This document shows positions 35,581 through 62,860 of a stretch of DNA of 64,000 nt, piece after piece (position 1 is the first letter of the stretch; each line of letters opens with the position of its first letter). Source of the stretch: Phallusia mammillata (Eukaryota); contig OZ281500.1 in NCBI GenBank assembly GCA_965637545.1, positions 8,246,001 to 8,310,000 of the forward strand, given 5' to 3'. The notes under the pieces are model-generated. The model saw nothing but the letters and a program-made list of their open reading frames with translations, did no database searches and was not told the DNA's origin. A program made the translations under genes and the position numbers.

Positions 35581-38500
35581 TTACAAATGTGCCGGTTTAG
35601 GTGGAATCACCGGTCGCCAAGTGTTAGCAACAGTAGGATTTGGTTTAAAGCTCAGATGATCCGTAACGCCATTTTCTTCAGATTTAACACCGGTGCCATT
35701 CGCTTGGTTGGTACCGAATTGCGGTTTGCGGGTCCCGACCGGGGGTTTCACTCGGGAATAGGACTTCATCTGTGTACTTTGTCCGAAAAGGCGAGGCGTA
35801 ACTAACGATGAATACGATAATGTAGGTTTTGAGGGAGATGAGTATGATTTCCAATCGTATCCGTTTGTTGAAGTTTCGTTGGTCGCAACACTTGGGGCTT
35901 GGGACAAATCGGGAATGTGATTTTCTGTCGAATGAGGTGACGTTTCGCTCTGCTCGTCCGTAACAAGGGATAAATATTCGGCTGGGGGCGGGGGCGGCAG
36001 GTCGTCGGGTTTCGCGAACGTCCAAGTCGAAACTATTGCGCTGTTGCCACTCGCCACGGTTTCCGTCGCTACAGCGGGAGGCTGGGTAGCATTATCGGGA
36101 CTCGCCCCCAAGTTCGGCGCCATCTTGATATCATCCAGGGGCAACTCGGAGGACTTTGGACTCGTTTGTGTCGCATCATCGGGGGATGGCACTGACTCTG
36201 CGTCATCGAGGTCACTATCGTTTACGTCACTTGACGTAGGAAGGATTGCTACGTCACTAGGCAAGTCAACAGCATGTGGTGCATTGTGGTTGTCAGGCAA
36301 ACTCTCGTGATCCACGTTGCTCGCATTTTCATCATCCAAGCTTTTTTCGTCGTTGGATGTTGCATCATCTGTGTCGTTAACACTGGATAAAGACTTTGAA
36401 AATTCACCTTTGTCGAGGTCAGACACCGTTAAAGTCGCTGGCTCAATCTCGATGTCTGGTTCTGGCTCGGTTAAACCGTCTTGATTATTGACGCTCAACA
36501 GACCATCCGAAAGAACAGGTTCTGCGGAAGGTGGCTCTTGTGGCGTACTCGGTTTTGCTACGTTAACAACATCACTCAAATTATTGTAATCATAGGATGA
36601 ATCATTCGATTCCGAATCAAAACATTTTCCACCGGCAGCAGTCGGTTCTGTTTGTGCTATAGGTGTCAATACGTCATCATTTTCCTCACTTTCATTTTTT
36701 GACACATAACGTGACTCAGCATTTTCCTTACCACCTGTTATTGAAGCGTCACCATCACTGCTTTCCAAATGCGACTCTTCAGCACCCACTTGCGGCTGTG
36801 GAGTAGTGTCGACTTCTTCAAGGTCTTCTGTTGCTGGTGCTTCGAAATCGTTTCGTTGCTCAGCTTTCGAGTCACTTTCTTGTACTGGATCGTTGTTGGT
36901 TTTAAGATATGCAAAAATCTCGCCCATTAATGAACCCTCGCTGCCATTCGAAGCCCTTTCGGGTGTTGGTTGCTCGAAATCCACATCGCTTTCGACGTCG
37001 ACATCATCGTCATCAGAGTGCATATGCCTTAAATCAAGCGGTTCAATTTTGACCGCATCTCTTTCAAAATCGACGCCAATGTCTGAGTCAGATTCAGATT
37101 TATTGGAATGGGTATCTTGATCCGTGATGGGTGATTCAATGGGAGGAGGAGGGACTCTTGGCGGGGGCGGGGCTTTTCGCCTAATGCTGTCTTTCTTATC
37201 TTTAACGCTCTGTTTCTTTACCTCACTATAAACTTGCCTGGAAGCGGGAACTGGAGGTGGATTGTCCTTTGTGGGTTCAACATCATTTTCCTCATCCAAA
37301 TTTTCCGGCTCCTGTGTACTGGATGTTCGGTTGCGGGCAGGTTTTGTCGGTGGTGTCAGATTGCCCCAATTTTCGTAGTCGTGCGTTGTTTTCTCCTCGA
37401 CCTTCTTAGTTTTATTTTCCTCCTCAGAAGGACTCTCATTGCTCTCTCCTGAAGATGCACGAAGCTTTACAGTCTTGATGGCAAGACTGGGTTCCGGCAA
37501 ATGAAAAGCAGCTTGTGTTCCTTTGGGGGAAACGCTTTCGTTCCCAGAATCTGCACTGTGCTTCGACGGTGATCGCTTGATGGAAAAGTCCATAGGTAAT
37601 TGCTGGAAAGTCATAAAGCTTACGGGCCTTGGACTAGCCGTGACTTTTTCTCTCGGACGCATTTGTACCTCTTCGACTGACGTGACGTGTTTTAGCTCTC
37701 CAGGTTGGTCCTTCTCAGTTTCACCGCTGTCAAACACCGAATATGCCCCACTGTTGAGTGTATCACTTGACATAGGAGCCCCAATGTCTCTCGAGCTAAT
37801 GTTTACTGTGTGCGTGTGTCGGCGCTTTTTGCGGGAGAAAAGCCTGAAGAACGAAAATTTCTTAGTAGGTGTAGGTGTGGGCGTAGAATCTGGAGAGCGA
37901 AAGAATCTCCATCTTCCGCTTTTCTTTGCTCCTGGCATTGGATCCCGGTTAAGGGACATCGACGAAGGACTTTTTTCACTTCTAACAGAGTAAGAGTGTG
38001 ATGGTGAAAATATGCTTCGAAAGAACGACTTCTTTTTAGGCTCTTCTTTGTCGCTCAGACCTGTGTCCAGGCTGTAGCTGCGAGAAAGAGAATCGCGACC
38101 AAACCAAGAACGACGGTTTCTCTGCTTCTTAGAGTTTTTCAGACTTTTGTGGCCGCGTGCCAGATCGTTAACAGGCAAAGGACTGCCGATAATTTGTTCC
38201 TCGGGTTCGTTTTGGTCTTCCTCGTTGCCTTCGTTTAGTGAAAGAGAACTTTGTACGAGGTGGTCTTTCAGCTGGTCGCTGGTAAGAGTGTTACGCGTCT
38301 TTTGCGGCTCTTCAGTTGAAACTGTTTCCACCTCTGTGTCCTGAACCACGTCCGGTTTGAAAGACGAAAACCGATGCCTTTTCATTGCAACTGGATGTAG
38401 TTTTGGTGATGCTTCCGAAGATGTAGGTTGATCGATTGTTGCATAGTCTTCCTCTTCTTGTACATCCTTTTCTGTTGCTTCGACTTCTTTGTTCTCTTCT

Positions 38501-41500
38501 GTTTTGTTCTCAACCTCCGCGGGAACTGTCTCTTCCTCTTTGTTTTGTTCCTCTTCCTTGTTTTGGTCGGCTTGCTCTTCGGACACTGCGTCGGTGATGG
38601 TGAGGTCTTCTGGTGGTTCGCTTCCGGAGGTAGAGGAAGAAGAATCAGTTGTAGGCATTTTGTCCTCGACTGGTTCGTCTCGTGACAAACTGATCTCCTC
38701 GTCATTGTACAGAGCCACCATCAGTTCATTCCATTCGCCGTCCCCGTTACCCCTCTCAGCTTGTTCGTTGGTAGGGGCTTCCCCAGGACCTTCCGGATGT
38801 GACGTCACGGAGCCAATACCGGATGAGGGTGACGAAGAAATAACGGATGAGCCTGATGAAAACGGCGACAACTCGGCATGAGATAAAGCTACTCCCTCGT
38901 CGTCGGTTACTAAGTGATTTCTTGGTGGACCGATGTCGAGATTTGGTGAACTGGAAGCCTCCTTATCCTCATTAACTTCGACTTGTGTTTCTTGTTCCTG
39001 TTCTTCCACGATAATCTTGCTTTGTTGGTACATGGCCCGTACGGAAACTGGAATTTGGTCAGAAAGAAGGGAGCTCTGGATCGGCTCGCTGAAGTCACAA
39101 TAGAAGAATGTGCTGGAAGGTGATGAACCTGTAGCCTCCTGAGGATAGTTCCAATGAGATGGCGTGACTTTGTGCGACGCGAAATACTCCAACTCTGTTT
39201 GATGCAAGGTAACAGTTAGAATGTTGTCTTGTGAATGTGGCTTTTAGGTAGATTAAGGTTTTCCCATTTTACCTACCTGTGGTGCTTTCAGCGATTGGTA
39301 ACGTAAGCATCATTTCATTGTTATCGTACACACGACAATATCCAGAGATCATAAATGCAAAGGTTTGAGCAGAAAGCGGATGCATCGCCAGGACAAGCGG
39401 CTAAAAATAACAACAATAGTTACCCACATTGTAACCTTCAACATTTTGTATTAGAGTGATTGATGCACAGGACTTACAGCCATTTCTTTGAATTCAACTC
39501 TCACGTTGGTTTTACTTGCTTCGGGTTGGCACGGGGCGACCTCTACCGACGTGACGCATGTGAAATCTGCAAAGATCGACGCCATCTTGGTTTTGCTGTT
39601 CACCAGCTGACTGATGCCGTAGTGATGACCGACCACAAGCGTTATGTCGGACTCGATCACAGCCTGCAAGTTTAAAAAAGAAAACTAAAGGGATTGTAAC
39701 ACTTATTAACACGCATATCATTTTTCGACTTGGATTTAGTGTACACTTTTTACCGAATTAAATTGGATTGCATAATTAGCATGATATCAACCGATGAAAT
39801 GTTTTTTAATAACATTTTTTACAAAAATTGAGTTTTTTGTTTGTTATTTTAGGGTCTTTAATCAGGTCCTGTGGGTTGAATCGCGAGGCCAAAACACCAC
39901 TCAAATATGTATGTCTGGCGATAGCTTGTGATTACGCAAATCGCAATATTTTCTTGGCGGTCAGGAAAAAAAGGCCAGACGCAATCAGTCGGGAATTTGA
40001 TTGAAAACCAAATCTTGTAATTATTTTCCAAAATAGCCTAGGTGTTTACGTCAATTGTGTAGCAATTGTACCAGTAAGCCGGATGTATGTTAAATGAAAG
40101 ATTTTTCTATCTGTTAAGTGCATTACCAGCTCGCGCTGGGCCTAATTACCAATATCGTTGCATCGAAGTATCTGCCAGCATAGAGGTGATGCGGGGACAG
40201 AATCTTGACATATTGCATCCGGATTCGTAATAGCAGACCATCCACACTCAGATGACGCTCGCTTGTGGGCGAAGTGGGCGGAGACGAGGTACGGGTTCCG
40301 CCCCCATTTCCCAACACGTAATTGGCGAAGTTTGCCTATATGTAACAAAAGGCGAGCTAAAAATATATTTACCAGCTTGTGTTCGTTGTGATTAATAGAC
40401 AATATTTTTTAATGTTTACATTGTAAACTCGATCGTTTTGCGTAAATGATTGAGCGAAACCGCAAATGGGAAATATGTTTACAGGTACTTTGCCATACTT
40501 TGAGGTACTGTTGTAAGGTCTTTCTGTGTTCTTTAGATTGGTTGGAATTGACCAAGGCCAAAACGGAGGGTGACAAAAACCGTGCCAAGCCGTACTCTCT
40601 CCTGCACAAACAAAAGCATGTTGTTGGTTATGGATTAAAAATTCACGTTTTTGTTGTCGATAAAAAATCTATCAAGGCCGCTCGTGTTAAAACTCTAATT
40701 GACAGAAAATCGTTTGAGGTTTGTTATTTTGCAGGTGTAGGTAACCTCGAATTCAGCTGTATAACATTATTTAACCCCACAACACTTTTTCATATACGTT
40801 ACAAATACGGCAATAATGGAAGTTTTACTTGAAACTTTTCCCTCACGTATGCCATAGTATCATCCCGTATTCGACTTTTTTGAGTAACACTGTACGTAAG
40901 AAATGAAGCAATCAGCCATTGTAGATTGTCATAGGCAAAAAAGTTTTTGATTGCTGCTGTCACACGCCAGTATGTTCTTACATGGGAATTTTGTCCTAAT
41001 CACTGCGTTTGCACAACTACGACAGGCGTCAAACGGCAACAATCAATGAACTCTGCTTACTCAATTTGCTTTAGTGATATTTTGCTTGGGGCGCGGAAGG
41101 ATTTTTTCCTTGTGGGCGGGGCACTGTCCACTCCCTCTTCGCTTTTTTCATCTGCGAACTGACCAATGAAAACTTCGAGCATCTGGAAACTGGCCAATCG
41201 CAGCGCTTCGTCTAACGTAATGTCGTCGGTGAAAACGTCGCCTGTTAACATAAATGAAGTTGTTTTTTCTGCAAACGTTGTGTTGCCTCATTACGAAGGG
41301 AGTTGTAGTTTTACTATGTGGTATAAGTTACTTCACGATACATGGAAGGCCTCTTCTGCACTTTTGGGTCGAAATCTGACATCAGCACAAAACGTTTTTG
41401 TTTTAACAAACTTGAAGGAAAATTTAAACTTCCATGTGTAGCTTATTTGTAGTGGCCAAACTGCCGAATTTTCATCCTAAAGCTGACATATAAGTCAACA

Positions 41501-44500
41501 CTTAATGCGGTGGCAGTGAAGGGCACGGTACACTCGAAGCTGTGTCAAAGGTATTTTGATAGGCTTAATCAATTATTCACCGGCAACAACGTCGTTCACA
41601 CATTGCACGTAGTGATAGCGGAAGGAACGGGGATCATCGCGAGACAATTTATGGATGTCTTTCGACACGAATGTCAGCCGGAAACGACACTCATGGTATT
41701 TCACTGAGGGATTTGCGACGACCTGCGAAAAAAATCGTAAATTTTGAATCGAAATGAGACCTGTCGAATCTTTATGATAAGAGAGAGTGCTCATCTGGTT
41801 TTGCATTTTCCATTTTATTAAGTTAACGACAAAATATAAAAGTCAATTGAGTCGAAATTTTAAACACAATTTTGCAGTCAAGTATAAGTTAAAGAAAATT
41901 GACACAATTTTTTGAATTTTGGCTTGCAAAAGCCCAGTAGAAAAGTGAAGTTTTCAAACGTTGGTATCCTATGGTAGCCGATAGGACCACATAAAATTCC
42001 ACCCAACTGTAAACTGCTTTCAGTTTATTGGCTAATTTGTCAACTGTTTGTTCGTGTCTGTCAGTGATGGGCCACTGTTCTAAAATTGTTTGATACTGAA
42101 ATGCAATAAAAGCGGTTTAAGAGCCCGGCGTTGTCACGGGACCTCTTCAACACTCGGGGGCGCCGTTGGTGTTATCCCATGATTTACTTTCTGTCGTACA
42201 AAATGATTGTTAGTGAATAAAGAACATAGGCAATCCTTTCTCCAATTTTTGCTGCTGACAAATGATTATAAACGAAGTCACGGAAATGTTTGTTTTATGG
42301 AGTTTGGGCAACAATGGAATGCAAGATAGGTGAACTATTCAATGTCACACATTTGCCAATGTAAATCATTGCCTAGCGCACCTAACGAAGTCGTGAATGC
42401 AAATCGATCAACGAATCTTGTGACATGTTTTCATCTTACCTTGGCAATGCAATCCCAAGGAGCGATCAATATTTCATCGCATGTTCGGTTTCTGCGCTGA
42501 TCCCGGTGTTCTGCACAAAATAAAGCGTTCACAGTGTTACATAAGCCACCTCCGTAACCTTTCTACGAGTCCTAAGCATTGACGAGTAAAAGAAAATCGA
42601 TTGGGGTGCTAGAAATTGAATAGCCAGTCTAATTTAGTAGAGGCGATATTCGCCAGACAAGCCTGTGTCGCAAATGCAGTGGTGCAATTAAAGTTTGAAT
42701 TATTGGCGTTTATATTGTGGCCGAGGTGATGCTTCATAGCTTGTAAAGATAATTAGGGTTTTCAACAGATGTCCCTAACCGGAAAAGAGAATAGCACAAA
42801 AATTAATTGGAAACTTTAAAGAGAAAACATAAGTCATTTGTCAATAGAGTTCTAATTAGTAAGTAAAAAAAGCTTTTTTTTCCATTTTTGTTTTTTCGTT
42901 TTAAAACATTACATGACCAGTAATTGGCAAAAAGCCACTGTAATGTATTTTAGAACTCAAGGTACGAATTTATCGCTCACCGACTTGTTTTACGGGCGTA
43001 AGCACAAGAGAGTAAAGTTTTGAGTCGACAATGCCCAGTTTATCGCAAAGTGCAGTCACCACATCGCCCGCCGTTGTTTCGGAGCTGAACTGGAAAGACC
43101 GAGATTGTCCCTCCTCCAAAATTACCTTTAGAGTTCCAGGCACGATCAGCAGAGGACTGGATCCAGGCGGCTGACAATACATTACAAGGATTACGATTTT
43201 TTAGTATGAACGTTCCAAATAATAAATTTCTTAATGCTACAAAATAGTATACCAAAGTTCACTAATAACGAAACTGAAGGATTGTTATTGGTTGATGTCG
43301 CACTTGGAATTATTTTTTCTGTAGTGTAAAGCGCTGGTCCCTCAACTTTTTTAGTAACCAAACACTTTTGTGTAGTTCATTAGGTCTGTGGACCCCACGT
43401 ACCATTACACCCTTGATAAAACACTTTTTGCATTCACGGACCCCTATCTCACGAAGCCACTGTGGATCCACGAACCCCATACATACAAAGTTTAGATTAA
43501 ATGACACTTGATTGGTTACTGTACAAATCATACGTTTTCTTCTCCATCGACTCCATTGTCATCTGCGAACCTCACCCTAGGTCTGCTCATTCCTCTCATT
43601 AACCGCTTGTTCGGCTTAAGAAACGATGAGTTAGCAACCTGTGCAAAAGTTTAAGTGATTAATGCTATTTCCTGACTTTGCATGTAGAGGAGCGTCAGCA
43701 AGATGAATAACATCTATTAATGGATCAAACGTGTTTCTGCATATAATGTTTATCAGCAAAAATCATATGTGAACATATTTCAATACCAAGCACACTATAC
43801 TATTTTATTTTCGACCTTTAGAACAATTTCCAGCCCTCGTTCAGTGCAAACTGTCACTGCTAAGCAACTAGCAGTTCGGCAACAAGTAGAACATTAACTG
43901 TGGCATTTACTGCGCGACAAATTGCCCTCATTCATTACGAAACTGTTTGGACTTTCAGGCAAACAAATGCAACGTCGACACGATAAACATCATTTGCTAT
44001 GTGATGGGTGGCAGACCCCTTAGCGTTGGGTAAACCTGCAGCTATTGGTTCGGGAAACGGAAGTTATATAGGGTTGACTTGTCCGTTGCACATCAACGCC
44101 TTGTGTATGCCGTGTTTGTTTAAGCACTGGACGTTTGCACGCTTGTTCAAAGTGTCGTTATGAATTTTTGAAACTGTATGACAACGATCGCTAAATAAAC
44201 GTTGGGAAAAAAACAGTCAGCTCAATTTACACAGATTCACGCAAATAAATTCAGTTTCGCCTCATAGGACAATACTGAATGCCAAACCTATGCAAATATG
44301 ATAACTTACCCTTGTGGGTTGCACAACAGTCAAGGTTACGCTGTCGGAACTTAGCCTGCAAATGATAGAATAATGTAAATATACGAAGTTTGTTTTGTAG
44401 TCTGTTTAGCCGTGTTGTTATAATTACAACAATACTTGTCATTAGAACAAACATTGTAGATAGAATTTCAAGGTTAGACCAAACATTGTGACCAGCCTGG

Positions 44501-47500
44501 ATCATAATATTAAAAACGGCCTGCCTGGAAAATTAGTATAATTGAACATCTGAATTGTTTAATCGAACCAAGAAACATGACTAAACAATTGATCACCTGA
44601 TCAGATCAATGACAACCTCTCGAGCCGAGTTTCGAACGTATTCTGATCCGACTTTGATCACATGATCTCCGGGCAAAAGTTTTCCCTGAGACGGTCCACC
44701 TGCAAAAAAAACGATATTTAATACAACGTCGGTTACAAGTTTTCTATCAGCAAAAACTTACAATTCTATTTTTTCTGCACCGGTACATAAATATCTACTC
44801 GTTATATCTTCCTTTTTCATTCAGATTTTAAACAAAATTCGCCGACAACTTTAGCAATTGCTGTTTGCATCAGTGTACAATACAAATCCCATGTAGTCAT
44901 TTTTTAGGTGTTTGTTTAAGGCGGTAAATATTTAACGTGTTGATACAAGGCAATCAAATGGAAAGGCCACTTCTTAAGAATTGATTTTCGCGTGGCTGTG
45001 AATCATCACCCAATAAGGCGAGTGCAACATGCATGATACAACCAGGAGTGACAGGGAAATTACCCCATAAAACTTGCAGGAGAGAACATAATACAGGTAT
45101 TGCGGGATTTTTAATCAAGTGGAAAATCGATTTTCGTCTATGTAGCTGTGAACGCAAGCTGAAACAAAACCCAAAATGACACCGAAAGGAGCCGCGGCGT
45201 TAGCTTTTACAATCGTCTCTTTTCGGCCAGTTAATTGGATCATGTGTGAACGTCGCTCTGAGTGCATCGCGTTGTATTTTCATCAGGGAGGTTACAATTA
45301 ATTATTTTCGGGTGCCGCGCGAAATCAATAGGGTCAGTGCAGCGCTCTAACCAGGAAGTACGCTAGTCCGATCGTATATGCTTACCAGGTGAAACGGAGC
45401 GAATGATCACTGGCTTTTCGCTCCCGGCGATGAAACCGAATCCAAGCCGATGGTGTCGACCGATTGTATACTTGCGAGGTGCAGGCGGTTCGTGGTCACT
45501 AGATGTCGAGCTTGAGTCTGTTTCGCCGTCACCGTTGACGCGGTCGCTCCTCGGGTCGTCGTAAGTCACTTGTTGCAGGACGTGGCTGCGAATAGTATTC
45601 AAGTATTAGATGTTTAACATTAAAATTAGGAACTAATGGGTGACAATGCAGAAAAAATGACATATACGCCCAAAAGGGGGTAAAATTTGTACCATGCTAA
45701 TACCCAGCCAAACCACAACATATAATTCGCCGAGACGTTTTTTAGAGAAATGCCGTTTTTATCCTCTATCCTTTTCTTGATTAAAAAACAAATCCTAAAC
45801 TAAAAGTAACACCCAAATGCACATTTCTAAAAGAATGCAGTTAATCTAACCAAGTTTAGCACAAAATGGAAATTGAGAGAAGTGAAACTTCTAACATACA
45901 TTTATAGTTGACACCACATACCGTACAAAAGATATGAAAGAGGAACACTGTTTGTTATAGCAACGCAAACCCATTCGGTGTCTTTTTAATTGTTAAAGTT
46001 TCCAGATTGCAGTTTGCACAAGAAAAAGTTGACCCGTTCCTTCTTTATAACCCGTCATCAAGAATTCAACGTCATATATGCAACTTTTCGCTTTATTGTT
46101 GCGCTTTTACTCTGCCCGAAAATGTCAAGAAAATTACAATAGATGGACAACACATGAAAACCCGTCTTTGTGACCTGGTCATTCTTGAATAAAACGCTTT
46201 TTCACAAGGATTTGTAACCACTGAAGCGTGAAGCTGAACAACAGGACTCAAAAAGGGGTGACATTTTTCACCCGATTCGTCAACAAGTGCCCGATTACAA
46301 GCGCTTGTGTTATGAAAAAATCCCCGTTTCTTATCGGGCGGTGTTATAATTTTAGAACATGTGTTATAACACAGCCCGATTTTATCGGCAAGGGTAGTGA
46401 AGCAATAAATTTATTTTTTATTGAAAAATATTATATTTTCTTTGGAAATAATCGCAGGTGAAATGGGTTTTACATGAAATTGGCAGTTAAATGTGAACTG
46501 TTGTGACAAAAGCAAACGCATTTTAAGCAGTGAAATAGCAGCAGTACCAGATTCTCCTCGATTGTAAACTGTAAAATACAAAATGGGCCAAGGTTGTTGT
46601 ATCTAATAGGCATCCATGTTCTGATAACAAATGGAGTAATGAAAAGTGACAGTTCAGGGTGGGGGAAGCATTTCTAGTGCTTTATGAAGCAAACTAGGGC
46701 CTAACACACTATCAAATGAAGGAATTGGGACATTGGATTTAAAAAGCAATGATACATGTGGTAAGTGGTTGTCAATTGTCATGATATGCTTGTCATTCTC
46801 AACTGTTTCTATTATTTTAGCAGATGGTAATTTGTTATCTTTTTAGGCATGTTTAAAAATATGGTAGCTCATCTCTAGTGTGATCCTGGTTTTGTAAAAC
46901 ATTGGCTTTCTATCTACTGGCCTAACTCAAGCATTTTTGTGTAAACTCCTACTTGTCAAATTAAATGTTGCATACACTTTTTCTTTTATTTTTTGTTGCA
47001 GTTCAACATCTGGAAATCTGAATAGAAGCAGAAAAAAGCAGCAGAATCATTCCAAAGGTAATTCAAGATTGCCTTGGACAACATGGAAGAAAGTAATTGA
47101 TGGTGGAAGAATGGTGTGGGTGAAATGAGCTCTCTGAAGTGTCAGCTAAATCATTGATGCATACAAAATGCTTCTTGCCTCACTTGCAGGGGAACATTTT
47201 ATTTTAAGATATTCACCACACACTTCAGTTTTACATGAATCAAATCGAAATATGTGTGTTTTTTGCCAATGTACTACCCGAAGGCAGGTTTATTTAACAA
47301 TTCTTGTGCCCAATTTAAAGCAAACTTGTTATGTTAGATGTGTTCAATGATTTGTTGGTGTTATTTTAATCTCGTACCCAAATTAAGGCAAACTTGTTGT
47401 GTTGGTTAGATGTGTTTAAACATTTGTTGGTATTAACGCTGTCTTATCTACATGACATAATCATGGCGTCGTTAAAAAAGCATCTTTTGGATAAATATTT

Positions 47501-50500
47501 ATACATTTTCACTTTGATGTAGACTCTTTCAGTAAAAGTGATTCATTAGACAGGAATGAAAAACTATTATTTTTGACCAGTAATCGCTATGATAGCTTGT
47601 TTGCCAGGATTGTTTGATACAACCTCATCTTTCACATGGTAGCTTGTTTAATTTTATTTCAGTAACTCGCAACACATTGCATTTTCAGCTGTACAATGTT
47701 GTTTCACCTTTTTTGTTTCTCAGTCTGTTTACTTGATGACCCCTTTTCAGTGTACTCATTGTAAATGCAGGTTTTTGCTTGATAAATCAATCTTCTAATT
47801 ATTTATCCTCTTCACATTTATTTCTTCTTTCATATAACTGTGGCACCCAATATGAGTATGTTATTGTGTGGAAATTGGGTTTATGAGGTGCTTCATTTTT
47901 TTCATTAATAAAATGTTGCCCTTAACTGTGCGTTTGTTATTTTATCATTTTAAGTGCTAGTCTTAACTGGTTTAAAATCACAAAGGGCTTGATGTAAACA
48001 AAAACGGTTTTCACAGGTCAACTCTAAACTACATCTAGTAAACGCATAAAAAATATCTTTAGAATCTAACCACCACATGATAAATGAGAGGCGTACATCA
48101 TAAGCGAATGAAGGGCATGACCGCTTAAAAATGATTTTTCGCGCTGACGACCCTTGTAGAATATACAGGCTCCAGATCACAAACGGATTAAGATAAATGA
48201 AAACGGTTTTCACAGGTCAACTCTAAAATACATCTAGTANNNNNNNNNNNNNNNNNNNNNNNNNNNNNNNNNNNNNNNNNNNNNNNNNNNNNNNNNNNNN
48301 NNNNNNNNNNNNNNNNNNNNNNNNNNNNNNNNNNNNNNNNNNNNNNNNNNNNNNNNNNNNNNNNNNNNNNNNNNNNNNNNNNNNNNNNNNNNNNNNNNNN
48401 NNNNNNNNNNNNNNNNNNNNNNNNNNNNNNNNNNNNNNNAATGAAAATGTTTTTCACAGGTCAACTCTAAAATACATCTAATAAACACATACCTAATATC
48501 TTTAGAATCTAACCACCATATCATAAATGAAAGGCGTACATCATAAGCGAACGAAGGGCATGACCGCTTTAAAATGAATTTTCGCGCTGACGACCCTTGT
48601 AGCATATACAGGCTCCAGATCACAAACGGTTAAAGGTAAATGAAAATGTTTTTCACAGGTCAACTCTAAAATACATCTAGTAAACACATACCAAATATCT
48701 TTATCTTATAAGAAGAACATCAAAAACAAGAGGCGTACATCATAAGCGAGCACAGGGCACGACCGCTAGTGCTGTCGATTTCATGTAGGCCTATAGCATG
48801 TAAATTTCTTGTAGCGTGTAGTATATACAATCTCAACGTAGAGTGATGATGAGCGCCTCTTGATTTTAGGGTAATGATAGGAATTGATTGATATTTTGCA
48901 TGCGTTCACTCGACGTAGGTCTAGTTTAAAGTTAACCTGCGAAAAACGTTTTCAATACTTTATGTCGTTTGTATTCTGGAGCCTGTAGCCTACATGCTGC
49001 TGAGTCGACAGCGCATAAAATTATTTTAAAGCGGTCATGCCCTTCGTTCGCTTATGATGTACGCCTCTCATTTATGATGTGGTGGTTAGATTCTAAAGAT
49101 ATTTGGTATGTGTTTATTAGATGTATTTTAGAGTTGACCTGTGAAAACCGTTTTTGTTTACCTTAAACCGTTTGTGATCTGGAGCCTGTATATGCTGCAA
49201 AGGTCGTCTGCCCATAAAATGATTTTAAAGCGGTCATGCCCTTCGTTCGCTTATGATGTACGCCTCTCATTTATGATATGGTGGTTAGATTCTAAAGATA
49301 TTAGGTATGTGTTTATTAGATGTATTTTAGAGTTGACCTGTGAAAAACATTTTCATTTATCTTAATCCGTTTGTGATCTGGAGCCTGTATATTCTACAAG
49401 GGTCGTCAGCGCAAAAAATCATTTTTAAGCGGCCATGCCCTTCGTTCGCTTATGATGTACGCCTCTCATTTATGATGTGGTGGTTAGATTCTAAAGATAT
49501 TTGGTATGTGTTTACTAGATGTATTTTAGAGTTGACCTGTGAAAACCGTTTTCATTTAACTTAATCCGTTTGTGATCTGGAGCCTGTATATTCTACAAGG
49601 GTCGTCAGCGCAAAAAATCATTTTAAAGCGGTCATGCCCTTCGTTCGCTTATGATGTACGCCTCTCATTTATGATATGGTGGTTAGATTCTAAAGATATT
49701 TTTTATGCGTTTACTAGATGTATTTTAGAGTTGACCTGTGAAAACCGTTTTTATTTAACTTAAACCGCTTGTGATCTGGAGCCTGTATATGCTACAAGGG
49801 TCGTCAGCGCAAAAAATCATTTTTAAGCGGTCATGCCCTTCGTTCGCTTATGATGTACGCCTCTCATTTATCATGTGGTGGTTAGATTCTAAAGATATTT
49901 TTTATGCGTTTACTAGATGTAGTTTAGAGTTGACCTGTGAAAACCGTTTTTGTTTACATCAAGCCCTTTGTGATTTTGAACCAGTTAAGACTAGCACTTA
50001 AAATGATAAAATAACAAAAGCACAGTTAAGGGCAACATTTTATGAATGAAAAAAAAAATGAAGCACCTCATAAACCCAATTTCCACACAATAACATACTC
50101 ATATTGGGTGCCACAGTTATATGAAAGAAGAAATAAATGTGAAGAGGATAAATAATTAGAAGATTGATTTATCAAGCAAAAACCTGCATTTACAATGAGT
50201 ACACTGAAAAGGGGTCATCAAGTAAACAGACTGAGAAACAAAAAAGGTGAAACAACATTGTACAGCTGAAAATGCAATGTGTTGCGAGTTACTGAAATAA
50301 AATTAAACAAGCTACCATGTGAAAGATGAGGTTGTATCAAACAATCCTGGCAAACAAGCTATCATAGCGATTACTGGTCAAAAATAATAGTTTTTCATTC
50401 CTGTCTAATGAATCACTTTTACTGAAAGAGTCTACATCAAAGTGAAAATGTATAAATATTTATCCAAAAGATGCTTTTTTAACGACGCCATGATTATGTC

Positions 50501-53500
50501 ATGTAGATAAGACAGCGTTAATATCAACAAATGTTTAAACACATCTAACCAACACAACAAGTTTGCCTTAATTTGGGTAAGAGATTAAAATAATACCAAC
50601 AAATCATTGAACACATCTAACATAACAAGTTTGCTTTAAATTGGGCACAAGAATTGTTAAATAAACCTGCCTTCGGGTAGTACATTGGCAAAAAACACAC
50701 ATATTTCGATTTGATTCATGTAAAACTGAAGTGTGTGGTGAATATCTTAAAATAAAATGTTCCCCTGCAAGTGAGGCAAGAAGCATTTTGTATGCATCAA
50801 TGATTTAGCTGACACTTCAGAGAGCTCATTTCACCCACACCATTCTTCCACCATCAATTACTTTCTTCCATGTAGTCCAAGGCAATCTTGAATTACCTTT
50901 GAAATGATTCTGCTGATTTTTTCTGCTTCTATTCAGTTTCCAGATGTTGAACTGCAACAAAAAATAAAAGAAAAAGTGTATGCAACATTTAATTTGACAA
51001 GTAGGAGTTTACACAAAAATGCTTGAGTTAGGCCAGTAGATAGAAAGCCAATGTTTTACAAAACCAGGATCACACTAGAGATGAGCTACCATATTTTTAA
51101 ACATGCCTAAAAAGATAACAAATTACCATCTGCTAAAATAATAGAAACAGTTGAGAATGACAAGCATATCATGACAATTGACAACCACTTACCATGTATC
51201 ATTGCTTTTTAAATCCAATGTCCCAAGTCCTTCATTTGATAGTGTGTTAGGCCCTAGTTTGCTTCATGAAGCACTAGAAATGCTTCCCCCACCCTGAACT
51301 GTCACTTTTCATTACTCCATTTGTTATCAGAACATGGATGCCTATTAGATGCTATTTCACTGCTTAAAATACGTTTGCTTTTGTCACAACAGTTCACATT
51401 TAACTGCCAATTTCATGTAAAACCCATTTCACCTGCGATTATTTCCAAAGAAAATATAATATTTTTCAATAAAAAATAAATTTATTGCTTCACTACCCTT
51501 GCCGATAAAATCGGGCTGTGTTATAACACATGTTCTAAAATTATAACACCGCCCGATAAGAAACGGGGATTTTTTCATAACACAAGCGCTTTTAATCGGG
51601 CACTTGTTGACGAATCGGGTGCATTTTTTGCGAGACAAGCGGTTGTCACGCATCAGCAGTTACCACTGTTTTTGTGCCTTGTCTGCACAAAGCAAGCCTT
51701 TGAAGCGGAAAATTAAATATTGCAAATGCACCTTGTAAACCAACCTTTGTGGAGTTAAGATTCCACAGAAACACAGGCGCATTTAACACATTGTGCTACC
51801 TAAAACATTTTTATTGACAAAATGCTTTTGTGACTAGGACCAATGTGAGGTATATATGCTTTCAAATTTAAATTTAACAGTTTAAGCCACTGTTTCTTGA
51901 CCAAACAGTACTAACAAACTCGCTTTAAACAGAAGAAAAAACGAAGGAAAAAATGCACACCAAATATTAGGGATTTTCGCATTGATTTCAGTAACCTCTT
52001 TAAGTTGCATAGACACAAACAAGGGTAGGTAGATTTTTACTGCTAGTTCGTGGAATAGGGCAGGGGTCCGCAAATAGTGGGTCGCGAGACCTTCCAGTCT
52101 GGGTCGCGAAATATTTTAAGTTTCCCATGAATATTCTACAGTATTAATGAATTTCGGCTTTTTTCAACCTTTTAATCATTATTGCATTGTTACGTATGAC
52201 TACGTAACTGTGCCATACAGTCTATGTAACAATGCAAAAATTTAAGCGCACCTAAGCAAGCATGCGTTTTGTGATTAGCTGTGTTCTCAACACATAGCCC
52301 ACAGTTCTCATTTGTTAGGATAAATACGTTCGTTTACCTACTGTGAAAACAGCAACTGACAATAGCATTATAGCCGTCTTAATATTGATATTTAGTTGCT
52401 TAGTATTTTCCACAAACTTACATGCTAACAAAATGCTTGGGTCGCGATAATTTAGAGCAATTTTTTTAGGGTGGCGCCAAAAAGTATTTGCGGACCCCTG
52501 GAATAGGGTAAACACCGATTTGTGTTGTTGACCACCACATTTCGATTTTCGTAACAAGTGAGTAGTGACTAAGCTACCTGGTAATAACCACAACGAATAT
52601 TTTACTTGTTTGTTAGATTGTTTGAGTCACTGCGGTTGCGGGCACGGTGCCAAAGTGTGTTAATTTTAAACATGGACAAAAGGCAGATGACCTTGGATTT
52701 GGCTGTTTAAGTTGTTAATGTTAAACCTTGCTATAGGATACTTTTTCGGCGTGACCTGTTAAACATTTTTATGGGAAGAAATATGTCTTTGGCTCAACAA
52801 ACCGAAAAGTAGCCAAGTAAAAGAACATATCCCTTTAACGCTTTAACAGACGCAAGTAAAACGTATCGTAGGTATAACGTTTGTATGCAGTGATAATTTC
52901 GGTGGGCTACAGTTAAAAACGCAACATTTATGGAGTGTTTTCAGAAAAAAAACATTAAATGGTGTTTCACGCCTTCCTCGATCAATTTCCACAAACTAAC
53001 ATTAAAAATGCCACCCGTGCTTCTATAGATTTTCTTCTTTGTCATGTGTTTATGCAGGGGTGTATTTACGCACATTCTATAAGTCAAGCGAAACCAACTT
53101 GCAAATCCCGAGAAACTGAGGAAAGCAGATAAGAAAAGTCACACTTTTTCGCGGTTGACTTCTCTGGCAGCCTGGGTTTGCTGCGTTGGGAGATCTATCA
53201 AGTGCAGCTGAAGTCACGCGGAACGATAAACAGGCCCAACCGCAGTGACTGTTTTTCTGGTGCCGTAAACGTGTGACCTATACCTGAATGGACGTGAGTT
53301 TTTGGAACTAAACCTAAAAGACTGAATTAATTAAGGAAAAAAACAAACATCATATGAATCATCCCTTGAGTAAAAGCAACTTTTGACAGCGGGTGCTTCG
53401 TTTGAACATTGAAAATATCTCCAAGAGTCGGTTTCAACTAACATAACATTTTCAGTAATTTGGTTAATGAGGATTTTTTTGCGTTTTCTTCTTTTAAGGC

Positions 53501-56500
53501 TTGATGTCAACGGGAAATCGTTTTCGGATGATGAAAAGATTGGAATAACAAATAAGTCTATACCTCAAGCAAATGGGGAAGCGTTTCCGTGGAATGTAAA
53601 CTACCGTGATCCCATGTTTTAAAGAAAATAGTTTCCCAATACAGAGCATAAAACGAGTAAACAAGATGACTCAAATACGCGGAATGCTATGTATAAATTG
53701 CCCGACAACATCCTGTTGTGGCCACATAGTGTACTTTATCTAATATTTTGACGTCTGTGTGAAAATTTAGTTCTTACTTTTTAATATAACTTAATAGGCA
53801 AAGTCAACGCAAACTATAGGCGGTAGTATTTAAGCTTTAACAGCAAAAACTTTGAAGAATACGAGTTGGTATGGGCAGCTAATTGGAAATGTGTTGGGCA
53901 CACATGCAAAACATATTGCGTTACAAGACTTTTGTATATTTTACAGATATTTACACCGTTTGCAATTACTTCGCGAAACAAATTTGCCCTGAATATTTGT
54001 TTCGGACTGAATTTCGCAAATAGTTACAATAGCAGATAAATAGTGTATGACTTGTACAGACATCAAGCCAATAAATGATAAGCTGTAGTATGTGACTTAC
54101 TTTATGAAATACGGTCTGTCAGAGTAGTCGAGTGCCAGTTCCCATCCATACGGCAAATTGTAAGCGCAAGACCAACTTTCCAGTGGAGGCAGAATCTGTA
54201 CGGTTTGACTATGCAAGCTGCAAGTGTACAAAACAGTGATTATATGTTTTAGTTTTTGTGACCTATCTGCATTGCATACATGCTTTATCATCTTGGTTTC
54301 TACGATTGATATCAAACAATGTTCATGGCCATATTAAATTCATACAGTCGTGCAAAAACTGATTACTTTTCGGAATGTTTCGGCAGATCGCTTTAATGGC
54401 CATGTCTCTATCGCTTTCTACAAGATTTTGAATGGCGTAAAGATTTTTTTTGCCCATGGATGCGTGCCCTACAAGTGGGTTCAAAATGAACGGAGCAAAG
54501 CATACAAATCTATTGTGATACGCATACACGCACTAACTAACCAAGAACATGAGATCTAGAGAAATTTCAAACGAGTAACTGCTGCAAAATGGATTTGATT
54601 GCTCAACTATCATTAAAATTGGTGCAAAATATTGTTGGGTTGCCAAGCAGTGTCACTTAATCTGGGTCAAGGCCACTTGCCCTCACGCCCCATACACGTG
54701 ACATTTCGTGGTAGCACGCGCAACGTTGACTGCCCAATGAACAACGGAGCTATGCGAGTTTGCGTTCAATCGGAACAGTGAGAAGTGAAAAGCGACGGAG
54801 CGAGTAGGAAACCGGCGACAACTCCTCACAGCATCTTCCTGCACAATACTAAGAAATTCACCACTCGTATCTCGGTTGCTTGATTAGTGACTGGTAAGTC
54901 ATCTATATTTGAAGTACAGTAGTCCTAACTGATGCAGATGTGGCCCTTCTAGTCGTATGTTATGAATAGTTCGAACGCAACGGTAAACAAGAAAAGTTTG
55001 TGTCGTAATGGCAACCTATAGACTGTAGCTCTTAGACAATTTTCGCATTTGATTACACATCATTTTCGTAAAATGCAATGCACCTATAGTCATTACCTAA
55101 GCAAAGCATGATAAAAATGCAAGCCATGTCTGTATGCGAACTTTTTAACATTAACTTGATGCAATGAAAAACGCAATTGATGCCTGTACATTTGACCCAA
55201 CCCTTACCCACCGCATACAGCTACTTATTGTTGGCTAATAAACAGACGGAAATCTTCAGAAGTTCATTGAAAGTTAGCACAAATACGCATTACAAAGTCC
55301 AAAACGACAGCGTTACAATTTCTTTCAACGTTTGTGTAACACGCTTTTCCAGAAAACGAAATCTGATATGATTTTTTAAATCTCAATGAATTCAAACCGT
55401 CTAAGATTATCTTTTACAAATAGGCCGCTTAAGGCCACCAAGAGTTAAACGCCATGTGTGACCATAAATAATGCATAGAATACCTCGAAAAGCTAGTGCA
55501 TCATTACTTAATGCAATTTGTTTCGTGCAGGCCATAAATTACCGTTTAATGCTGTGCAAGCCAACACTTTAGCTGTATATGACACTGTAAATCTCATCTG
55601 CCACTAAGATGCAATCGAAAGGCTTTGCCTCTAAACTGGACCAATTAAATTTTAGTACATTCGTGCGAGCAAAATTGAAAACCTCAACGATATACAGCAG
55701 AAGTTTTCTAACTCTGTGGCTTTGCGACATTATGTGAATTTTATCCAGTTTCTACGCAAACAGACCCATTGATGGTCATTTTAATGCCATCAGAGGGAGA
55801 GATATAGCTCAAGAGCCCCCAGAAAGCGACTCTAGCAAAGAATCCGTTGGACAAAAGTAGCATCGGCTTACATTATCACAACAAAGAAACTCAAGCAAAA
55901 CAATCGGCGATCACAAACGACAACCGTGCGTTTCATTGAGGGTATAATTTGTCTCTTGATTCGATCTGTGGTGATCAATGCAAAACGTTTTAACGGTTGC
56001 TGTTTCAAACATAGCCCCGTTCTTTATTGTAAGGCAAGAAGTGTTCAATCAAAATAGACAAGTGCTCTTGTTATTACTTCTGCATTTGCGCATTTGCTGT
56101 CAGGGTTTTGGGTCTCTAATTGTTTCCTATTGCGATGGGCAGCGCTATCAATAATTCATCGTGACAAAATCGTTCGGCAACAGGGGAATCTTGTCCACGC
56201 GTTGTCGAACTTTAAATATCGACTGAAATGCTCGTCTTAAAGCTCACCCCATATCACCCATACGTTTTGTTGAGGTTACAATTGTAATGCAGTGTATAGC
56301 AACTTTAATGCATGTCGGCCATAGTAGACCTCTACAAATTTTACCTTACTCTAAAATCTATATCCGTTAGGGATTAAATAAAGTTTGTCTGCAGTGATGC
56401 CAATCACATAAATCACGGTCAACGCATATTTCTAAACTTCAACTTCTTTGAATTCGAAGTTAAAGAGGTCACATACGCCGCACGACTCCGTCATTTGAAA

Positions 56501-58199: not shown

Positions 58200-59086
58200 C
58201 TTGGTCTGTTCAACAAGTCTATATTGTTAACTTTTGACTCAAGCAAAAAAAAATTTTTGCAAAAATTAAACTTACTTGCTTAGAACACCTGTCCTTGCAG
58301 AGCCAAGACCATATGTATATCCATGTAGCTACAACATTTCACAATCACAAGAACATTCAACTAGCTATTTGTTATAAACTAACTATAAGTTCCCAAAATA
58401 AACATGTGTTTATCGTGCATTTGCGCATTACATCTTTCTGCATGCTTAAATCAAACTGAAGCGCATCCTATAACTGTGTATTCCACAGTAGGCTAGTCTA
58501 CAGCGTGCATGTCATGTCTCAACTAACATAAGTATTTAGCCAGAGACAATGCTATTCTCTGAGGCACACAAGAAGCCAGAAAAATGATTTAACGGGCAAG
58601 CGAATGCCAATGCCTACTTTAGAAAAAGCGCCCCGCTTCGATCACTTGGCTGCGTTTGTGCCGAAAGAAAAGCAGTGCGACACAAATCAGCCCTTTGTCG
58701 TCGCCTGGCGGCAATTTGTTCAATTTAAGTTAATTTTGCATGTTAGCAAAATATGTCATTACAAATCACAATGTATTTTCGCTACATGTAAGCAAAAACG
58801 CCAGGCGTTCCAGATTATATTTTGACAAGTTGATTGGAAAACATATAGGCCTTCCGCACTGGTTCTCCTCAAGCGAAAATGTTTTCAATATAGTTTTATT
58901 AAAATTTGTTCTGAACTTAAACTTATTCATTTACATGTACTATCGTTTAGTTTACTATGGGTAATTTATTGAAGAAAACAAAGCTGAAAATAAAATAATA
59001 CAGAAAACAAAATTAAAAAAAATATAGTTTCCAATCGTTGTGAAATAACATAATCACGCAAGTCAGCGGTGCGGAACGGTGTGTGG

Positions 59087-59096
59087 CCTCTTTCTC
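59087..59096 (+). promoter_or_regulatory. TCT/5'TOP start motif of RPL14
   Basis: Pyrimidine tract CCTCTTTCTC about 30 bp upstream of the ATG, typical of ribosomal-protein transcription starts. Confidence 0.7.
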
Positions 59097-59118
59097 GATC
59101 GCCGTGCTAAAAGGCAAG

Positions 59119-59532
59119 ATGGTGTACAAAAAGTTTGTCGAAATTGGCTCCGTGGTCTACATCAGCCAAGGGCCACAGGCAGGAAAGTTGGCAGCTATTG
59201 TCAACGTCATCGACCAAAACCGCCTTTTAGTGGATGGGCCGTGTAACAACGTCCCGCGATGCGTGGTCAATTTGAAAAATGTTCACTTGACCAAATTTCG
59301 CATAGACCTGAAATGGGGTTCCCGAACCAGTACAGTAAAGAAGGCTTGGGAGACGTCAAATGTGAATGAAAGTTGGGCGGACAGCAACTGGTGCAAGAAG
59401 ATTCAAGCAAAGGCAAGGAAAGCCCAGCTCACCGACTTTGATCGCTTCAAGTTAATGAAGTTGAAGCAAAAGCGAAGACGCATCATTGCCAGTGAGCTTA
59501 ACAAGATGAAAAAGGCGGCAAAGGCATCTTAA
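59119..59532 (+). CDS. RPL14: 60S ribosomal protein L14 (eL14), intronless, 137 aa
   Basis: MVYKKFVEIGSVVYISQGPQAGKLAAIVNVIDQNRLLVDGP...LTDFDRFKLMKLKQKR. AATAAA at 59546. Confidence 0.97.
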   Translation: MVYKKFVEIGSVVYISQGPQAGKLAAIVNVIDQNRLLVDGPCNNVPRCVVNLKNVHLTKFRIDLKWGSRTSTVKKAWETSNVNESWADSNWCKKIQAKARKAQLTDFDRFKLMKLKQKRRRIIASELNKMKKAAKAS

Positions 59533-61723: not shown

Positions 61724-62860
61724 ATGGGAATACTTGGTTTATCAAAGTTGATTTTTGACAAAGCTCCATCAGCAGTAAAGGAAAACAGCATTAAAAACTA
61801 TTTCGGTCGAAAGGTGGCCATTGATGCCTCTATGGCAGTATACCAATTCCTCATTGCAATTAGACAAGATGGAAATCAGCTGACAAATGATGAAGGTGAA
61901 GTCACCAGCCACATTGCAGGTTTATTTTATCGCACCATCAGGCTTCTTGAAAATGGCATAAAACCAGTCTTTGTTTTTGATGGTAAGCCACCTCAAATGA
62001 AGTCTGGTGAACTAGCTAAGAGAGCAGAAAGAAGAGAAGAAGCTGAAAAGCAACTGGCGAAAGCACAAGAAACTGGTGAAAGTCAAGATGTTGAAAAATT
62101 CTCAAGAAGACTTGTCAAGGTCACCAAAGAACATATGTTCGATTGCAAAAAGCTTCTTCGCCTAATGGGTGTCCCTGTAGTTGAGGCACCAACAGAGGCA
62201 GAAGCACAGTGTGCTACTTTAGTCAAATCAGGCAAAGTTTATGCCACAGCTACTGAGGATATGGATGCACTTACTTTTCACTCTAACCGACTGCTGAGAC
62301 ATATGACCTTTAGTGAAGCAAGGAAAATGCCAATTCAAGAGTTTGTGTATGATCGTGTTCTATCAGAAATGGAGTTTACACATGAACAGTTTGTTGACCT
62401 GTGTATTTTACTAGGATGTGACTATTGCGAACATATTCGTGGAATTGGACCCAAAAGGGCTTTCGATTTGTTGAAGCAACACAAAAGCATAGAGAAGATC
62501 CTACAGTCCATTGATACAAAGAAGTACACTGTGCCAGAAGACTGGGTGTACAAAGAAGCAAGACAGCTTTTTCTTCAGCCTGATGTATCTGAAGCGAGTA
62601 ACGTTGAATTAAAATGGACTGAACCAGATGTTGAGGGGATTGTAAAGTTTATGGTTGAGGAGAAAGGATTCAATGAAGATCGCATCCGAAATGGCATTAA
62701 GAAAATCGAAAAGAGTCGGCAAACTAGTACACAAGGCCGCCTTGATGATTTCTTTAAAGTTATGCCATCTACACCAAAAACCAAAAGAAAATCAGATACC
62801 AAAATAAAGTCGGAGTCAGCAAAGAAAAAAGCCAAAACCTCATTTAAACGAGGAAAGTAA
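61724..62860 (+). CDS. FEN1: Flap endonuclease 1, single coding exon, 378 aa
   Basis: [59 protein letters not shown] and the PIP box QGRLDDFF. Acidic catalytic residues are intact. Confidence 0.99.

Follow-up and report, generated by a model that had tools for sequence, protein, structure and literature searches.

The question raised by the stretch of DNA studied here, 64,000 nucleotides of the genome of the sea squirt Phallusia mammillata (assembly GCA_965637545.1, contig OZ281500.1, positions 8,246,001 to 8,310,000 of the forward strand; hereafter the window), is what to make of a 5,353-bp foldback palindrome at window positions 46269-51621. Is it a mobile element or a product of genome assembly and, if mobile, which kind of enzyme moves it? 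The original prediction, made from the sequence of the window, had proposed a P/Galileo-like non-autonomous element with a 7-bp target-site duplication. Having surveyed the 240-Mb genome for related loci (contigs are labelled C1, C2 and so on, and fetched loci carry the letter L), we consider that the palindrome is best explained, with a probability of roughly 0.6, as a young non-autonomous foldback transposon moved by a P/Galileo-like enzyme.

The inverted arms, the inverted arrays and the flanking CATTTTT on which the proposal was based were all found. Five long inverted-repeat pairs tile positions 46269-48239 against 49712-51621 with 97-100% complementarity, namely, from the ends inwards, 46269-46540/51350-51621 (99%), 46601-46758/51193-51350 (99%), 46759-47016/50937-51194 (100%), 47015-47902/50052-50939 (99%) and 47896-48239/49712-50055 (97%). 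Inverted-repeat search and arm alignment delimited a unique left arm of 1,697 bp (46269-47965, plus strand), which faces a unique right arm of 1,566 bp (50056-51621, minus strand). Global alignment showed that both are 99.4% alike and differ by 10 mismatches and one 61-bp indel, in agreement with the earlier description of arms separated by single-nucleotide differences and an indel. The indel is a stretch of about 61 bp at 46541-46600 (plus strand) that, in the window copy, only the left arm contains. Behind the unique arms lie inverted arrays of a 199-bp unit. The right array (49004-50055, minus strand) holds about 5.3 units, of which 4.9 tandem copies were detected at 49004-49974, and the inverted copies of the left array occupy 47966-48767 (plus strand), where they are broken by an assembly gap. 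A non-palindromic centre of 236 bp (48768-49003), also kept in sister copies, separates the arrays, and the expectation of almost no spacer between them proved roughly right. The ends of the element read CACCCGATTCG...CGAATCGGGTG (CAC...GTG), and CATTTTT abuts both, at 46262-46268 on the left and at 51622-51628 on the right. Thus, the CA...TG ends and the 7-bp duplication could be read directly at both junctions.

The palindrome is not alone in the genome. A 29-nt sequence from its end occurred 80 times (44 forward and 36 reverse), compared with 0 occurrences of the reversed control, and 16 of the 19 end pairs examined were flanked by a perfect 7-bp duplication. These duplications differed in sequence from one pair to another and none of them extended to 8 bp. 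The search for further copies with 7-bp duplications, which had been suggested for this locus, was therefore positive, and the window element is one copy of a young multi-copy family, family A, with about 40 copies. Two sister copies, L031 (C5:7661339-7666846, 5,508 bp) and L032 (C4:23593528-23598834, 5,307 bp), were assembled without any N and have the same arms, arrays and centre as the window copy. When left arms were compared with each other, the window copy, L031 and L032 were 99.76-99.82% identical, whereas the two arms within one copy were 99.0-99.4% identical and all three copies showed the same 61-bp asymmetry. Since identity between copies exceeds identity between the arms of a copy and the asymmetry is shared, whole elements must have been copied very recently from a common master, and the stretch present only in the left arm was inherited by transposition. 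In addition, there is a second subfamily (e.g. L033) with about 97% identity in aligned columns, in which both arms are complete. No empty site was found in the assembly, where the left flank of the window copy is single-copy.

These data bear on whether the palindrome could be an assembly artefact, either formed from a chimeric read or created when two haplotypes were mis-joined across a gap. A run of N does lie inside the element, at 48240-48439. This gap is located within the left 199-bp array, about 600 bp off the palindrome axis, and the 199-bp units have the same orientation on either side of it. As assembled, the flanking units are out of register (443 = 2 x 199 + 45), which implies that the nominal 200 N do not represent the true length of the gap. 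The corresponding interval measured 354 bp in L031 and 155 bp in L032, which, as far as lengths alone tell, are one unit apart. Gaps of this kind are common. Of 17 end-defined spans located on a single locus, 8 contained a run of 200 N (L035, L039, L051, L052, L056, L058, L059 and the window), which was invariably found within the 199-bp arrays or next to them, and further gapped loci were L054/L055 and L040. The assembler fails systematically on these foldback palindromes, and this is what speaks for an artefact, together with a locus on C1 that resembles an assembly duplication. At that locus (L040/L034, C1:30288880-30301453), a half copy with an N gap after it lies 7.3 kb upstream of a full copy and matches the left half of the latter at 99.96% identity. 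The outermost ends are paired by a matching 7-bp duplication, CTCCTTT, and the assembly has probably duplicated sequence here around a palindrome.

Against an artefact at the window locus, the two halves are tied to a single locus by a 7-bp duplication that matches across flanks unlike each other, by the single-copy left flank and by arm-specific differences shared with the sister copies. Besides, the gap is off-centre in a tandem array and away from the axis, and the same structure and arm asymmetry recur in gap-free copies at other loci. The copying of whole elements is incompatible with an origin from a chimeric read or a mis-join. Hence, an artefact appears extremely improbable and the palindrome is almost certainly a real mobile element, as the original prediction had argued from the differences between its arms.

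We then considered the ends, where the transposase would be expected to act. A relaxed end pattern matched 202 ends in the genome (control, 1+1) that sort into three families: family A, to which the window copy belongs; family B, which is rare, with about 8 ends including one 6.5-kb pair (C2:2446320-2452818); and family C, with 119 ends, one pair of which (C5:13149781-13154209) delimits 4,429 bp. Together, the three families amount to about 100 copies. Alignment and motif counts showed that the terminal 100 bp, corresponding to 46269-46368 (plus strand) and, as its mirror, to 51522-51621 (minus strand) in the window, are conserved across families A, B and C with 78-93% identity. Invariant blocks were located at +1 to +13, +24 to +29, +59 to +70 and +82 to +99. 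In contrast, the arms behind this common end are unrelated. For instance, the family C arm in L021 shares 78-79% identity with family A in its first 100 bp, and past this point the two are unrelated. Thus, families A and C, in the same genome, have in common the 7-bp duplication, the CAC...GTG ends and the terminal 100 bp, but differ in the arms beyond, in element length and in the terminal 20-mers. Several non-autonomous families that depend on a single transposase are typically recognised by one conserved end in front of unrelated cargo and, because this is the pattern seen here, the three families probably share one enzyme.

The motif CCCGAT or its complement ATCGGG is found at +3, +22, +65 and +107, the fourth position being just inside the inner edge of the block of about 100 bp. 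It occurs four times in each terminal 112 bp and is absent from the rest of the 5.35 kb, compared with 17 occurrences in the remaining 58.6 kb of the window (P about 8e-8, for a motif that was picked after looking). Judging from these patterns of conservation, the terminal 100 bp is likely a transposase recognition region, in which a conserved block at +57 to +73 and the CCCGAT motifs are candidate binding sites for a THAP domain. When the 199-bp unit was searched for end motifs that might serve as secondary sites, only one shared 8-mer was found, which is the chance expectation.

Which enzyme would recognise such an end? Foldback elements of the Galileo type are known from drosophilid flies and give rise there to natural inversions of chromosomes. 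Galileo makes 7-bp duplications at a target consensus GTANTAC/GTATTAC (PMC4168063). Its kilobase-long inverted repeats hold tandem repeats of about 210 bp in variable number, most copies are composed of the two repeats and nothing else, and in chimeric copies the 7-bp flanks do not match (PMC3573991). Within the P superfamily, Galileo and 1360 generate duplications of 7 bp and P of 8-9 bp (PMC3698922); the length found here is that of Galileo and 1360. The target preference is also similar. In a test carried out after the published Galileo consensus was known, 13 of 50 target half-sites, from 25 distinct sites, started with GT (GTA in 7 of them) when about 3 were expected (P = 1.6e-5). Among the duplicated bases, G stood at position 1 in 21 of 43 and C at position 7 in 18 of 43. 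A palindromic target motif of the P/Galileo type, with a GT start and an AC end, is therefore present. Regarding architecture, long inverted repeats, internal tandem repeats and copies made of two repeats alone were all found.

Taken together, the 7-bp duplication, the CA...TG ends and the GT(A)...(T)AC bias recall the '2T' copies of Galileo. Other shared features are kilobase-long inverted repeats with internal tandem repeats of about 200 bp in varying number, the absence of a transposase from most copies, chimeric copies with unmatched 7-bp flanks and an end of about 100 bp that is better conserved than the remainder. Also, the THAP footprint of Galileo at +63 to +80 (PMC3688188) can be compared with the inner block that is best conserved in the present element (+57 to +73). 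Unlike Galileo, the element resides in a tunicate rather than in a fly, no transposase is linked to it, its arms nearly meet at the 236-bp spacer and one end serves three families with unrelated arms; the likeness drawn here is one of architecture, duplication and target sites. The reasoning applied here to families A, B and C is the same that linked BuT5, a non-coding element of the Drosophila repleta group, to a presumed P master with which it shares the terminal 100-260 bp, approximately, the internal sequence being unrelated (PMC3698922). BuT5 differs from the present element in its length of 1 kb, its inverted repeats of 3 bp, its duplications of 8-9 bp and its known master. Ciona has P-like elements (cited in PMC3698922), and the literature collection searched contained no paper on foldback elements in ascidians or Ciona.

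The length of the duplication also separates this element from other foldback transposons. To our knowledge, only P (7-9 bp) and Dada (6-7 bp, RNA-gene-specific) among the described superfamilies give 7-bp duplications. hAT elements make 8-bp duplications, a length never seen in the end pairs examined, and were rejected. A resemblance in structure is offered by the Mutator/NOF group, because Foldback (FB/NOF), Tm1 and Rehavkus likewise are foldback elements whose inverted repeats consist partly of tandem repeats, and the palindrome could be conceived as a non-autonomous derivative of such elements. However, Mutator-like elements produce duplications of 8-11 bp, with 9 bp in Rehavkus (PMC6446971) and in Tm1/Foldback (PMC3169594), whereas the duplication was 7 bp in 16 of 16 matched pairs here and never 8. 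A duplication of 7 bp excludes Mutator/Foldback (8-11 bp) and hAT (8 bp) on length, and we accordingly regard descent from Mutator/NOF as very improbable.

A different possibility is that the same foldback transposon is moved by a transposase outside the P superfamily, belonging to an undescribed lineage with a 7-bp cut or to a source that has been lost or was never assembled. The GT...AC bias, which matches the target motifs of Galileo, 1360 and P, argues against it, and the targets found here are diverse and are not RNA genes, unlike those of Dada. The search for a transposase points the other way. P-type transposases combine a THAP domain with an RNase H fold that carries a GTP-binding insertion. 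The genome contains at least 52 matches to the P catalytic domains, some of them in intact frames of 728-744 amino acids; intact genes termed P-B are located near C3:12656428 and C85:11235. We compared the positions of five Pfam families (PF21787, PF21789, PF12017, PF21788 and PF05485, the last being THAP) with those of the listed ends.

Several results weigh against a P-type enzyme. Among the ends listed, no P-type domain lay between paired ends of families A or C, nor did the 6.5-kb family B pair contain a P or THAP match, so that a THAP/P transposase flanked by the same ends, the partner that the original prediction called for, did not appear for any of the five Pfam families. The sole positional candidate was at C7:15430492, where an end of family C is followed, 3.5-5.9 kb further in, by minus-strand matches to P-like RNaseH and THAP domains. 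The best-preserved P element, which we call P-A and which is the only one whose ends were read, was rejected as the foldback partner, since its ends are different and its duplication is 8 bp. Moreover, the target-site sample is small (25 sites), and neither CA...TG ends nor long inverted repeats with internal repetition are confined to the P superfamily. Apart from the C7 candidate, a degenerate P fragment was located 2 kb inside an end at C2:14042829; by a rough estimate, repeat-rich regions such as these should yield about one chance coincidence between an end and a P domain, and the two observed do not exceed chance. In the opposite direction, no foldback ends were found inside the P loci L041-L050. 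Weighing both sides, a non-P transposase is possible but doubtful and kinship with P/Galileo is likely: the duplication, the ends, the architecture and the target preference of the proposed element hold, and the link to a P-type transposase was not found.

P-A itself is a P-superfamily transposon of about 6.6 kb (C6:~6993428-7000050, from L060:686 to L065:2550 via L044), with inverted repeats of about 810 bp that are 96% alike, ends reading CACTGATCTC and the 8-bp duplication GTTATAAC. A copy on C3 (L043:22-2253, minus strand) retains an intact frame of 744 amino acids, and P-A looks autonomous from its sequence. The closest proteins elsewhere, including sea-spider, coral and limpet entries, are 62% identical to its product. 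The position of P-A, inside an end fragment of family B, is a case of nesting and not of partnership. Also in this region, a repeat of about 152 bp (L060:1-152) is very abundant, with 576 first-look candidates at 85-96% identity and clusters at about 23.75-23.94 Mb of C1. This repeat could represent a short interspersed element, a miniature inverted-repeat transposable element or a satellite unit.

The family A element has no detectable coding capacity. Neither the window element nor typical copies contain an open reading frame (ORF) of 120 or more amino acids, and no ORF or P-transposase relic was detected in the roughly 30 copies and ends examined. A tblastn comparison of the P proteins of this genome plus 120 outside relatives with all foldback loci gave no match. 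The element is thus very probably non-autonomous, and the absence of an encoded transposase, already reported for the window copy, extends to the other copies examined. The longer copies, of 6.8-10.1 kb, were rejected as autonomous elements; their extra length is made up of additional arrays, N gaps, partial duplicates and nested unrelated repeats, and they contain no transposase. In the C1 composite (L040), the ORFs had no Pfam match.

Two other sequences are found next to or within family A copies. The truncated copy L010 adjoins DDE_Tnp_4 fragments of Harbinger type. PIF/Harbinger elements use a DDE_Tnp_4 transposase and make 3-bp duplications, and they were rejected as a source because the duplication length does not fit and the fragments belong to a separate element, adjacent or inserted. 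In addition, an unrelated repeat with an ORF that shows a borderline GIY-YIG match (E 1.5e-4) was present at L056:3680-5359, L044:2858-3411 and L065:1-376. It is nested in a family A copy and also in the C6 copy of P-A, where it shortens the transposase frame.

Taking these data together, the element would move by cut and paste with a transposase supplied from elsewhere. Such an enzyme would recognise the conserved 100 bp of the end, CACCCGATYCGTC..., with its CCCGAT motifs, pair both ends, excise the element and reinsert it with a 7-bp stagger. The duplication and the target bias are themselves observed, and a 7-bp staggered cut at GT...AC-biased sites would account for them. By analogy with Galileo and 1360, which share the 7-bp length, the enzyme is probably a transposase of the P superfamily. 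The arms, the 199-bp arrays and the centre would be non-coding passengers that expand and contract by whole units, attract nested insertions and allow copies to recombine with one another.

A more far-reaching version of this proposal is that a still-active Galileo-like P lineage with a 7-bp cut outside insects, or an undescribed enzyme of the same cut geometry, mobilises families A, B and C by reading the 100-bp end marked by CCCGAT, and that unmatched flanks reflect true ectopic recombination. In this combined form the idea is tentative and we consider it unlikely; if the flanks did arise by ectopic recombination, chromosomes would be rearranged here as by Galileo in flies. Whatever the enzyme, at least three young foldback families of a sea squirt have in common a conserved end, duplications of strictly 7 bp and target sites similar to those preferred by Galileo, which suggests that a Galileo-like way of life is present in a chordate relative. 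Copies that are 99.8% alike indicate very recent activity, and the 100-bp end with its repeated CCCGAT provides a concrete handle for finding the enzyme responsible. On the practical side, these palindromes break the assembly, and exchanged flanks at some copies may mark either real rearrangements or mis-joins.

Three loci or pairs of loci illustrate such flanks and related duplications. The copy L036 (C4:17907393-17912280), which is placed 1,088 bp inside a family C arm, has unmatched flanks, GGTCAAG on the left and GAACCCT on the right, and GAACCCT directly precedes a lone left end on another chromosome (L030, C1:22757991); this match may stem from a true rearrangement, from a mis-join or, at about 2%, from chance. 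In Galileo, duplications exchanged in this way are a sign of ectopic recombination. L024 (C3:15659681) and L029 (C1:23346877), which are on different chromosomes, share 12 bp of right flank, that is, the 7-bp duplication plus 5 bp, and then diverge; 12 bp is too long for chance. Finally, L010 (C3:15566589) and L014 (C3:14436847) each contain a truncated family A copy with an end TACCCG..., 728 bp of arm and adjoining DDE_Tnp_4 fragments. They are inverted relative to each other, about 1.13 Mb apart and 99.5-99.7% identical including their flanks, and go back either to segmental duplication in inverted orientation or to a duplication made by the assembly.

As for the genomic setting, the window taken alone shows an ordinary non-coding transposon insertion beside, perhaps within, a gene. 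The neighbouring gene is on the minus strand and has one exon with a significant domain match, an RA/FERM-F1-like exon at 42970-43182 (Pfam RA_2, E 8.3e-10), which is also the clear exon nearest to the element. Two further exons, one PDZ-like (45363-45602) and one WW-like (about 54100-54210; WW, E 0.14), were read by eye; if the three exons belong to one gene, the element is intronic. An open frame of 1,208 amino acids at 35581-39207 (minus strand), for which Pfam gave no match, may represent a large last exon belonging to the FERM/RA gene. On the plus strand, the window also contains two single-exon genes, one at 59083-59532 for ribosomal protein L14e and another at 61724-62860 for a FEN1-type flap endonuclease with XPG_N and XPG_I domains.

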